Assembly (NCBI RefSeq): GCF_003704095.1
Contig: NW_020844270.1
Coordinates: 1 to 64,000 of the forward strand
DNA: 64,000 bases
Source: Pocillopora damicornis
Lineage: Eukaryota
Direction: 5' to 3'
Shown: positions 13,227 through 16,200 of the stretch, one piece after another
Layout of the letters: each line of letters opens with the position of its first letter
Position numbering within the stretch: position 1 is the stretch's first letter
Translations under genes and position numbers: made by a program
The notes under the pieces: generated by a model
Databases searched by the model: none
What the model saw: only the letters and a program-made list of their open reading frames with translations
Told to the model about the DNA's origin: nothing

Positions 13227-16200
13227 CTATTCCAAATCAACTCTGCGGGGGATCGGAGGTGGAGCTCCCTTGGCGTCAACCTTCAAGAAAGGTTCTTCAG
13301 AAGAGTCTTCCCCAGACACACCTACTTGGAAGTCTGGCGCAGTAAAACTAATGTTTTCGCTGGACATATAAGTCATTTTAGATGAGTTGCTGTCAGAGAC
13401 TGAAAGATAATTTTTCTGTTCATTTGGAAGTTCATTGAAGACCGGTTTACGTTTGGGTTTCAAAGGTGGAGAAGGGATAAGGTCCCGTCTCTGAGGAGGT
13501 TCCGGTTTAGGTACTTTCATGGCAGGTTGATTACTTTCAGTGACTGCCACTCCTGATGACTTGGTTTTTGTCCGCGGAGGTGCTACCGGTTTCACTGCTG
13601 TCTCTTCGACTCTGATATCATTTTTAGGGTCTTTTTCAAATACAATTGAACGAGGCCTGGGCATAGGAGTTGGTTTGGAAAGAGATGAAGCCCTTTTAAT
13701 TAGCTCATCTTCGTTATCAGCCGTAGCACGATGTGTGTTTGAACCAGGGAGAACCGAATCTGAACTTTTATCTTCGTCATGTGACGTCTGCTGTGTTGAA
13801 GGTTGACCATTTTCGCCTTTTCCATCTGAAAAAGAAAGTTTAATGTATTGCATTACGTAGCGTTACGTAGCGCTACATAGCGTGACATAGCGCTATCACT
13901 GTCAGGAAACTTCCTATTACTCAATGCGTTCGACCTCTATGCCCTTGCCACTGAAGGAACAGAAAAGGACGATACCCTATCCAGCGATCGGTTCTCTAGC
14001 ACTGCCTTGGTCCCGCGTTCAAAGAATATTTAACTCTCTTCCCGGCGATCACGTAACGCTAGACGAAGACAAGGAAGCGTTAGAAAATTAATTCGGCCCG
14101 AAATATACATAGTCTAACACCGACTTTTCTTAAGTAAGCATGTATATTTATGATCTATCTTCACTAGCCGGCAACCCTGGCGGTTTTATGGGGGTTGGGA
14201 ACAACAGGAAGAATGGAAAAGACAAAACCGCTGGCCCGTCACACCTTTTCGAAGCTCAGCCTTCTTCATTTCTGTCTGCCCCCTACTTAGCCTAATTGAA
14301 ACACCTGCTTTTGTTTCGGCTTTTTCCACCGAGTTCTTACCATCCTCTTTTTCACTGGTAACACCATCAGGCAGCAAAAATGATGGCAGTAGTTTAGGAT
14401 CATCTTTGGCTGCAAGCAACAAAGCCTGCACGTTATCAGCGCCAATGTGAGCCACATGTTGAACATTAAATGGAACACCAATACCAGGACCCTTGAAAAT
14501 AAACGTTAAGTCATTATGTCAGCTGATAAACAAACTAATGAAGCCTCCCTCAAAATGGCGGCTGACAATAAAATCATTTATCCATCGTACAACTCTGTTC
14601 TTTTATGTATACAGGGTGCATTGACACATAGGACTGGCAGAAAATAAGCAACCTACATGTCAAAATAATCCATCTCTAAAGAGTAAAATTACAAAGGAAA
14701 TTAATAACAGCAACCAAATGGTGCAAGTCACTGAGTCAGCTGTTATGGTCGCCAACAAAGTTCAGTAACTGAAGGAAAATAGAGGCATTGGTATGGTTTG
14801 GGGTATATATTATGTTATTAATTATACAAACAAAATCATGCAACTCCACTAAGTAACAGTGCAGTTTGATTAACGCTCATTTTTCCAAGTGACTAACTTG
14901 GAACAATAAGCGTCTCTCTAAAATATCAAAACATTATCGAGCAAGCAACTTAGGGGAATACACAAACTTATAAGCTGAAGGTCGTTTTCTTTAAGCAGCA
15001 CCATCTTCTTCTTGCCGATTTAAAAGGTCATGTATGGCAAGTGGAATAGAGAGTTACAAAACAGAGTACGCCCAGCTGAGTACCTGTTTGCCTTTCTTGG
15101 CGGATGCATGAATGACGTCCACTTTAGGCTTAGGCTTGGGTTTAGGACCCTCCGGAAGGGCCTCAGAGAGAGGCGCTTTAGGGCCACCAACGGCCCTTTT
15201 CGGAGGGGCTGGTCGTTTTGGCGGCGCAGGTCTGCTGGGTTTTGAAGGTTTTAAAGATTCCTTCACCAAGGGATCAAAATCATCAAGGGCCCCACCTGCC
15301 ACAGATTGGCCGGCGTCAACAGGTGCAGAAGCTTCAAGGATCTCCTCGACTTTGTTGACCTGAGCTAAGGCTTTTACTGGAGGTTTGGGTCTCGCAGGCA
15401 CTGGCCTAGGTGGTGGTGGCCGTTTAGGTCCAGGCTTTTGATTGTCGTCACGTTTAGAGCCTTCGTCTATTAAACAAAAGAGGCGTTTTGGTTTAGGTGA
15501 AGCAAAGTTGTAAGTGGGAGATTTTCCACTATTAAGAACGTTTTCAGGCACGAACCAGGATCATGGCGGGATTTCATAAAAAATCGCTACTGTCAGTCTG
15601 ATGGGAACGACAGTTTCTAATACCAACGTGATAGCGAAAAAAGTTCTTGCCACGAAACGGGCATAAGTACCACCAATAAAATGATTCAACCCACTGTCAT
15701 GCTCTCCTGAAGTCAAACGATACTTGAATTTCTGAGGGGAATTATTGCCTTAGTATCTCGTTTAAAACTTGAAACAGGTTTGGTGCTCGCAGTCTCATTT
15801 TCATCGAATGAAAAATGTCTAGGCAAAATTCTGTGGCAGCGAAGACTTTCCGATAAAACCTCCCTGCCACAAAGGCAGATTGTAACATAAAGCTGCATGA
15901 CTAAACAGTAGTAAGTTCCTTACCACAGCCTTCGTTGCCGGTCTTCTTCATTTCACGGTCTGCTTCGGGTTCGCTATCATCGTCACTATCATAATTTACC
16001 GCATAATTTCCTTCGTCTTCCGGTTCACTCTCGGATTTTTCATCATCCAAAGCTTCTGTTGAATGAATCCTGATTGGTTCCAGGACAGGTAAGTCCACTG
16101 ACTGCTTTTCTGAGGAGGACGACAACAGATCTGACAGCGCCCGACCTCTGACAGGATTTAACGTAAAATTTCTGTAATCTTCAGAGTTACCACTGAATGA

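Follow-up and report, generated by a model that had tools for sequence, protein, structure and literature searches.

The DNA analyzed here, referred to as the window, consists of 64,000 nucleotides (nt) from the coral Pocillopora damicornis (contig NW_020844270.1, positions 1 to 64,000). On its minus strand, from 36050 to 13174, it contains the only synaptojanin gene in the genome, and the subject of this report is exon 22 of this gene, which encodes a short motif of the CRIB (Cdc42/Rac-binding) type in the tail of the protein. Synaptojanins are the main phosphatidylinositol 4,5-bisphosphate [PI(4,5)P2] phosphatases of endocytosis, and their tails are seen as docking strings for SH3 domains and adaptors. 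The coral gene has the order by which a synaptojanin is recognized, with Sac1, 5-phosphatase and DUF1866 (RRM-like) domains following one another in one gene and on one strand, and then a Pro-rich tail. Profile searches placed Syja_N matches at 28186-29849 (-), 5-phosphatase matches at 19351-20920 (-) and a DUF1866 match at 18093-18287 (-), the last being the sole one over the cut-off genome-wide. When the hemichordate (Ptychodera) synaptojanin P0009 was used in a tblastn search, 18 exons were mapped from 36050 to 18099, and a comparison with a related-coral cDNA added five more, giving a total of about 23. An earlier reading made from the letters alone (the sequence-only reading) had called the gene a synaptojanin and the CRIB exon its exon 22; the domain order bears out the former, and the exon count fits the latter.

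Translation of 14342-14491 (-) reproduced the exon peptide of that reading, in which the CRIB core and the A-D that follows it continue as a Leu/Ala-rich stretch. The acceptor of exon 22 is ttttcaag^GGT at 14491 (^ marks the junction), the donor of exon 21 is AAACAG^gtactc at 15084 in phase 0, and the acceptor of exon 23 is ttttcag^ATGG at 13825 in phase 1. These sites confirm that exon 22 is in frame with both of its neighbors. A word search with the terminal-exon open reading frame (ORF) retrieved L003, a 1743-nt Logan cDNA contig from a related coral (run SRR13022806) carrying an ORF of 271 amino acids (aa), P0314. At the nucleotide level, L003 matches the window with about 89-93% identity in the coding exons and about 81% in the terminal exon plus 3' untranslated region (UTR), and it is colinear with 18126-18098, 16787-16704, 16295-15923, 15461-15084, 14491-14305 and 13825-13174. 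As five introns have been removed at exact CAG^GGT-type junctions, L003 represents a spliced transcript of the related coral. It runs from the DUF1866 exon through exons 19-23, so that in this coral the CRIB exon shares a transcript with DUF1866. The predicted 15084/14491 junction is present in L003, where it reads exactly CAG^[G/A]GTCCTGG (a 99-nt junction string was aligned locally).

The donor proposed for exon 22 at 14341 (GATG^gtaaga) did not fare as well, since L003 reads through it and is spliced 36 nt later, at 14305 (GCAG^gtgttt). L004, a second coral genome contig (ENA), carries a homologous exon with the sites cag^GGC and GCAG^gtgagg, which also supports 14305. Most likely, therefore, the donor is the one at 14305, which lengthens the exon to 187 nt and the peptide by 12 residues. 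Because both positions are in phase 1, exon 23 is read in the same frame either way. Skipping of the 187-nt exon would shift the terminal exon into a dead-end frame of 41 codons; hence exon 22 is not an in-frame cassette.

Could exon 22 be an open frame that arose by chance within an intron, or belong to a nested gene? The transcript support comes from a related coral and not from P. damicornis, and the mechanical ORF list, as the sequence-only reading had pointed out, misses the start of the motif and begins only downstream of it, at a GTG. However, the spliced cDNA L003, the near-identical exon with conserved splice sites in L004, the continuous ORF into the terminal exon in the more distant relative L002 (described below), and the better conservation of exon 22 than of its neighbors all speak against this possibility, which was rejected on these grounds and which we find hardly credible. 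We are highly confident that exon 22 and its CRIB core are real and are spliced into synaptojanin mRNA in a close relative. We read exon 22 as a constitutive part of the coding sequence in the one synaptojanin gene of the coral.

Amino-acid identities between the window and L004, L003 and L002 are listed for exons 20 to 23 in Table 1. Among the three corals, just one or two positions differ over the first 44 residues of exon 22, and this core is about two-thirds identical to its counterpart in L002 (a hand count from the alignment). The 44-residue core is the best-conserved part of the tail and is under stronger constraint than the tail around it. L002 (ENA) has the same gene order, with the motif downstream of Syja_N, 5-phosphatase and DUF1866. 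Its motif, IGMPFNVSHVGHIS, starts after a conserved phase-0 acceptor and lies in one 260-aa ORF that continues into the homologue of the terminal exon, ending PPPIPPRVDLN. Conservation in related species thus holds for the core in the three corals, with L002 ending in HIS rather than HIG. In L002 (18743-19549) the CRIB exon runs on into the terminal exon with no intron, while the phase-0 intron before the CRIB exon is kept; going by these genomic sequences, cnidarian synaptojanin has lost or gained an intron here, the motif and tail end forming one exon in the L002 lineage. At a further locus, L001, the tail was not reached within the 10-kb flank, and a representative search with the 5-phosphatase exon found no full-length close relative, the nearest matches being exon-sized ORFs on unannotated coral contigs.

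The coral core agrees with the CRIB consensus I-S-x-P-x(2-4)-F-x-H-x-x-H-V-G, with the conservative changes S to G, F to V and V to I; the first of these also occurs in the CRIB core of WASP. A strict CRIB regular expression matched once in the six-frame window, where 1.6e-4 matches are expected per window and about 0.6 per genome. In Pfam scans, made exon by exon and not on the joined spliced protein, the PBD family (PF00786) was the top match for all four cnidarian exon peptides, scoring 21.4 and 21.6-21.7 bits in the three corals and 14.1 bits in L002, against a gathering score of 21.3. The nearest three named ESM Atlas clusters were all PBD/CRIB (0.85 with 187 shared features, 0.79 and 0.77), a likeness that at these scores is a lead and not a proof. 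The proposal that the exon carries a CRIB-type motif is supported by both the Pfam and the Atlas results. When the 234-Mb genome was scanned in six frames with the PBD profile, the site took fifth place by score (E 0.22). Three loci account for the four matches above it, and two of these loci read as PAK-like PBDs, confirmed at 56 and 41 bits. Among solved structures, the N-WASP CRIB was the sole CRIB-type match and was not significant (E 0.85, below three chance matches to protein A).

The motif is not confined to corals. A two-sequence hidden Markov model (HMM) of the coral exon matched the Biomphalaria synaptojanin at residues 1171-1216, and an invertebrate panel was then assembled by a full-length search with the Ptychodera synaptojanin. 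In every panel member whose tail is complete, the pattern I-[SG]-x-P-x-x-[VF]-x-H-x-x-H-A-[ST] and, after it, ..EAxxLLQxLG are found some 120-300 residues past DUF1866, with Pro-rich stretches on either side. Such a near-CRIB occurs, at the same tail position as in the coral, in hemichordate (Ptychodera, ISTPYDVAHSGHAS), echinoderm (the crinoid Anneissia, ISTPFEFNHDIHAT; the starfish Asterias, ISKPFEVSHKAHAS), brachiopod (Lingula, IGLPTNVSHAGHAT) and mollusc (the bivalve Mytilus, IGLPTNVLHHGHAA) synaptojanins. An annelid synaptojanin probably carries it too, as judged from an Owenia fragment with a strong motif-HMM match (E 2e-10) whose residues were not inspected. In a full-length MAFFT alignment of 19 bilaterian synaptojanins (17 invertebrate proteins and two vertebrate SYNJ2 proteins), the motif aligned in every one, and its I and P are among the very few invariant columns of the tail.

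A motif gained in corals or cnidarians only, as a new exon or by shuffling from a gene of the PAK/WASP type, would have no counterpart elsewhere. The motif does sit on its own exon, and the coral sequences alone reach the Pfam gathering score, with the H-I-G-x-D ending typical of PAK and WASP. Nevertheless, the same core occupies the same place in the tail of the 17 synaptojanins from invertebrate bilaterians, SYNJ2 having a degenerate form of it, and beyond the core the exon has no extended similarity to the PBD genes of this genome. Moreover, with an HMM built from the 19 bilaterian motifs alone, the coral exon was the sole significant match in the six-frame window (E 0.0017), and when a profile of this genome's PBDs (three loci) was compared by hhalign with the 2314-column bilaterian alignment, the single best local match was the motif. 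These two tests avoid circularity. A coral-specific gain is very improbable in our estimate. The sequence-only reading had left open whether the motif was ancestral or lineage-specific; the bilaterian counterparts favor the former and contradict the latter. The sequence comparisons make us highly confident that the motif dates back at least to the cnidarian-bilaterian ancestor, and by the same comparisons corals are the animals that keep the most canonical form of an old synaptojanin-tail motif.

Two further proteins were encountered among the synaptojanins compared. P0047 (1594 aa, taxon unknown) is synaptojanin-like and has two SH3 domains between Sac1 and the 5-phosphatase, an unusual architecture. 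P0213 (Haliotis, 2239 aa) is annotated as synaptojanin-2-like and has matches to the Pfam families of protein kinases and the POLO box as well, probably because its gene model is a fusion.

In vertebrates the motif has taken different courses in the two paralogues. Turtle and frog SYNJ2 have ISKPYNVKQIKTT plus the helix in the same alignment columns, whereas none of 98 vertebrate SYNJ1 entries scored with the motif HMM. In bat SYNJ1 (P0210), VISAPQSLARAS occurs near residue 1190, at a tail position similar to that of the SYNJ2 motif and with no motif-HMM score; from its position, it may be the last remnant of the motif in SYNJ1. Malecz et al. are said to have reported vertebrate synaptojanin-2 as a Rac1-GTP effector in 2000. 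The C-terminal domain of SYNJ2 contains a Rac1-binding domain and that of SYNJ1 does not, and the glutathione S-transferase (GST) construct derived from clone 2H28 of the 2000 study corresponds to SYNJ2 aa 1023-1497 (PMC3547897; also PMC3645678). The motif lies at residue 1157 of the 1523-aa turtle SYNJ2 and would fall inside this construct when the numbering is moved by inference from turtle to human. The paralogue that keeps the motif is accordingly the one reported to bind Rac1-GTP, and the degraded SYNJ2 motif may be the place of SYNJ2's unmapped Rac1 binding. Our literature search found no paper describing a CRIB in any synaptojanin and none mapping the Rac1 site within SYNJ2, Malecz 2000 itself being outside the search.

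The fit of the motif to a GTPase was examined by modeling the 50-residue exon peptide with a Rac1-type GTPase (P0427, a database protein and not the coral's own), GTP and Mg, as the sequence-only reading had suggested. The complex scored 0.83 compared with 0.01 for the best of three controls; 51 of 78 solved complexes attained the mark set for this score, as did 2 of 108 mismatched pairs. Model runs shared at least 76% of contacts, and the partner had a predicted local distance difference test (pLDDT) value of at least 65. The predicted interface involves GTPase residues 23-25, 34, 36-47, 53, 64-70 and 166-173 and peptide residues 2-18 plus parts of the helix, with contacts on the Rac beta2 strand, switch I and II, alpha1 and alpha5. 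This is the canonical CRIB pose of the PAK, WASP and ACK complexes. The model indicates likeness and not binding. In the coral itself, Rac and Cdc42 are encoded by multi-exon genes; a search of this genome for an intronless canonical Cdc42 or Rac gave RhoA-like and divergent Rho genes and one Rac/Cdc42-like exon running into an N gap. Elsewhere in the same genome (G000:C2036:22801-46169) at least six RhoA-like GTPase genes, all intronless, stand in a tandem cluster.

The explanation that we consider probable is that exon 22 places a CRIB-type motif for the docking of GTP-loaded Rac or Cdc42 in the synaptojanin tail. According to this proposal, the motif and its short helix would lie within the disordered, Pro-rich C-terminal tail, where Rac or Cdc42 in the GTP form at the membrane would capture it; the motif would add a strand to the beta2 strand of the GTPase and touch switch I and II. 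Capture would bring both catalytic domains, Sac1 and 5-phosphatase, to places where Rho GTPases are active, with removal of PI(4,5)P2 there, while the flanking Pro-rich exons would bind SH3 endocytic adaptors. The motif would have persisted as a near-CRIB in most of the sampled invertebrate bilaterians, in a form without histidines in vertebrate SYNJ2, and would have been lost in vertebrate SYNJ1. That the motif binds a GTPase at all seems to us somewhat better than an even chance; the choice of GTPase and the cellular role are inferred as well.

Several observations weigh against this explanation. The PBD match of the exon peptides is limited to profile positions 2-19 of 59, and in the three corals its score lies at or just above the cut-off. 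The C-terminal part of the family (positions about 20-59, the beta-hairpin and helix of PAK and WASP) has no counterpart in the exon, while this genome's PAK-like PBD aligns over positions 1-56. On these alignments the coral motif is a CRIB core and not a full PBD of the PAK/WASP type. In the genome scan, where the same site was part of a 110-aa open frame, its score was 19.9 bits, below the cut-off. As solved CRIB complexes exist, the complex model may have passed by reproducing them, and its GTPase is not the coral's. In L003 (860-870), one extra A in a run of seven near the end of exon 21 breaks the frame, probably as an assembly error rather than a real polymorphism, as the 271-aa ORF continues beyond it. 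The hhalign match had an E value of 0.052 and a probability of 1%, and is not significant by itself. Bilaterian motifs have A-[ST] where CRIB has V-G; no PBD match came out of whole-protein Pfam scans of bilaterian synaptojanins (6 at first, then 19), and precomputed Pfam lists show PF00786 in no bilaterian synaptojanin. The motif goes unflagged in standard annotation. It is absent from the model of an Oscarella (sponge) transcript and from two flatworm models. Finally, SYNJ2 has kept I-S-x-P-x-x-V in ISKPYNVKQIKTT and lost both histidines, and its conserved function may, from this pattern, not need the residues that define a CRIB.

Much of this bears on the main rival explanation, namely that the conserved tail motif serves another partner or an intramolecular contact, its CRIB likeness being convergent or vestigial, and that it binds no GTPase of the Rho family. 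This alternative, unlikely in our view, stays alive because the SYNJ2 motif is His-less and the bilaterian forms fall below Pfam PBD detection. It is also favored by the replacement of V-G in bilaterians, by the retention in SYNJ2 of the motif with an EA..I..L helix and without the histidines, which means that something besides the CRIB histidines is under selection, and by the helix itself, whose sequence is kept within a lineage but is not the same in corals and bilaterians, and which lies outside the PBD match. On the other hand, the six CRIB-defining positions (I, S/G, P, V/F, H, H) are present with CRIB spacing from corals to echinoderms, a chance match to the motif costs about 1e-9 per site, PBD is the best match in both Pfam and the Atlas, and the predicted pose is the canonical one with clean controls. 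Par6 semi-CRIBs, furthermore, are generally known to bind Cdc42 though His-less. The paralogue that has kept the motif is the reported Rac1-GTP binder (PMC3547897).

Docking of a Rho-family GTPase remains our preferred explanation, and it can be extended, more tentatively, to a view that we regard as possible and would not call probable: that the ancestral animal synaptojanin was a direct CRIB-type Rac/Cdc42 effector, that the tail motif is the Rac1 site of SYNJ2, and that its loss from SYNJ1 marks the parting of two paralogues, one coupled to Rho GTPases and the other purely to SH3 domains. The distribution of the motif suggests that lipid turnover was coupled to Rac/Cdc42 activity before the cnidarian-bilaterian split. 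For the SYNJ2-Rac1 link, the sole connection of synaptojanins with Rho GTPases to have been reported, these results offer a candidate site of about 15 mutable residues. If the proposal is true, synaptojanin would join PAK, WASP, ACK, MRCK, Par6 and BORG as a class of CRIB effector, which would be relevant to coral phagocytosis and symbiont uptake as well as to vertebrate SYNJ2-driven cell invasion.

The features of the locus are collected in Table 1. Retroelement-like ORFs, including reverse-transcriptase-like stretches, occur within synaptojanin introns at about 21600-22950 and 30600-33700. Upstream of the gene lies a small cluster of G-protein-coupled receptor genes, with four intronless ORFs of about 320-350 aa at 39192-40154(-), 50694-51659(+), 58820-59875(+) and 61798-62757(-), all four with a match to 7tm_1, the profile of rhodopsin-family 7TM receptors (E 2e-19 to 5e-33). 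Runs of N are found in the window at 1345-1444 (100 nt), 4366-4465 (100 nt) and 4601-5295 (695 nt).

Table 1. Features of the synaptojanin gene in the window, with amino-acid identity (%) of tail exons to L004 / L003 / L002
Feature	Position	Strand	Evidence	Identity (%)
Exons 1-11: N-terminus, Sac1 domain, linker	23702..36050	-	Domain matches and tblastn	
Exons 12-17: inositol polyphosphate 5-phosphatase domain	18582..23363	-	Domain matches and tblastn	
Exon 18: start of DUF1866 (synaptojanin RRM-like) domain	18099..18311	-	Domain match and tblastn	
Exon 19: end of DUF1866/RRM-like domain	16704..16787	-	Related-coral cDNA, exon comparison	
Exon 20: acidic/Ser-rich tail exon	15923..16295	-	Related-coral cDNA, exon comparison	83 / 85 / 48
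Exon 21: Pro-rich tail exon, last residues KKGKQ, phase 0	15084..15461	-	cDNA, splice site, exon comparison	83 / 84 / 40
Exon 22: CRIB core, helical segment, short acidic/basic linker; 187 nt, phase 0 in, phase 1 out	14305..14491	-	Translation; boundaries by colinearity with L003 and homologous exon in L004	92 / 88 / 52
CRIB core I-G-x-P-x-x-V-x-H-x-x-H-I-G, then A-D	14441..14482	-	Regular expression, Pfam PF00786, complex model	
Upstream GT (GATG^gtaaga), donor of the sequence-only reading; possible alternative 5' splice site, same phase	14339..14340	-	Read through in related-coral cDNA	
Exon 23 (terminal), coding part, Pro-rich	13230..13825	-	ORF, acceptor, cDNA	60 / 70 / 25
Exon 23 stop codon	13227-13229	-	3' UTR aligned to 13174	

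Compared with known systems, the coral motif shares with the CRIB/PBD (PF00786) of PAK, WASP/N-WASP and ACK the core I-[SG]-x-P-x-x-[FV]-x-H-x-x-H-[VI]-G-x-D and, in the model, the pose on the beta2 strand, switch I/II, alpha1 and alpha5 of the GTPase. It differs in having Val for the consensus Phe and in matching the N-terminal third only, without the beta-hairpin or autoinhibitory segment, and its host is a lipid phosphatase whereas theirs are kinases or actin nucleation factors. Short CRIB-only effectors such as the plant RICs resemble the coral tail in presenting a bare CRIB core within an otherwise disordered protein, and the closest ESM Atlas clusters consist of small CRIB proteins that occur most often in plants; unlike synaptojanin, such effectors are small adaptors without catalytic domains. 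The animal Cdc42EP/BORG and CDC42SE/SPEC proteins are also short CRIB-only effectors. The Par6 semi-CRIB is of the I-S-x-P-x-x-F type, lacks the two histidines and binds Cdc42-GTP, and this binding needs the adjacent PDZ domain. It provides a precedent for the His-less pattern of vertebrate SYNJ2, although SYNJ2 has no PDZ beside its motif. SYNJ1 has neither the motif nor Rac1 binding (PMC3547897 for the latter). The vertebrate SYNJ2 motif, unlike that of the coral, is without both histidines and V-G, but SYNJ2 belongs to the same enzyme family as the coral protein and has its Rac1-binding activity in the C-terminal domain.

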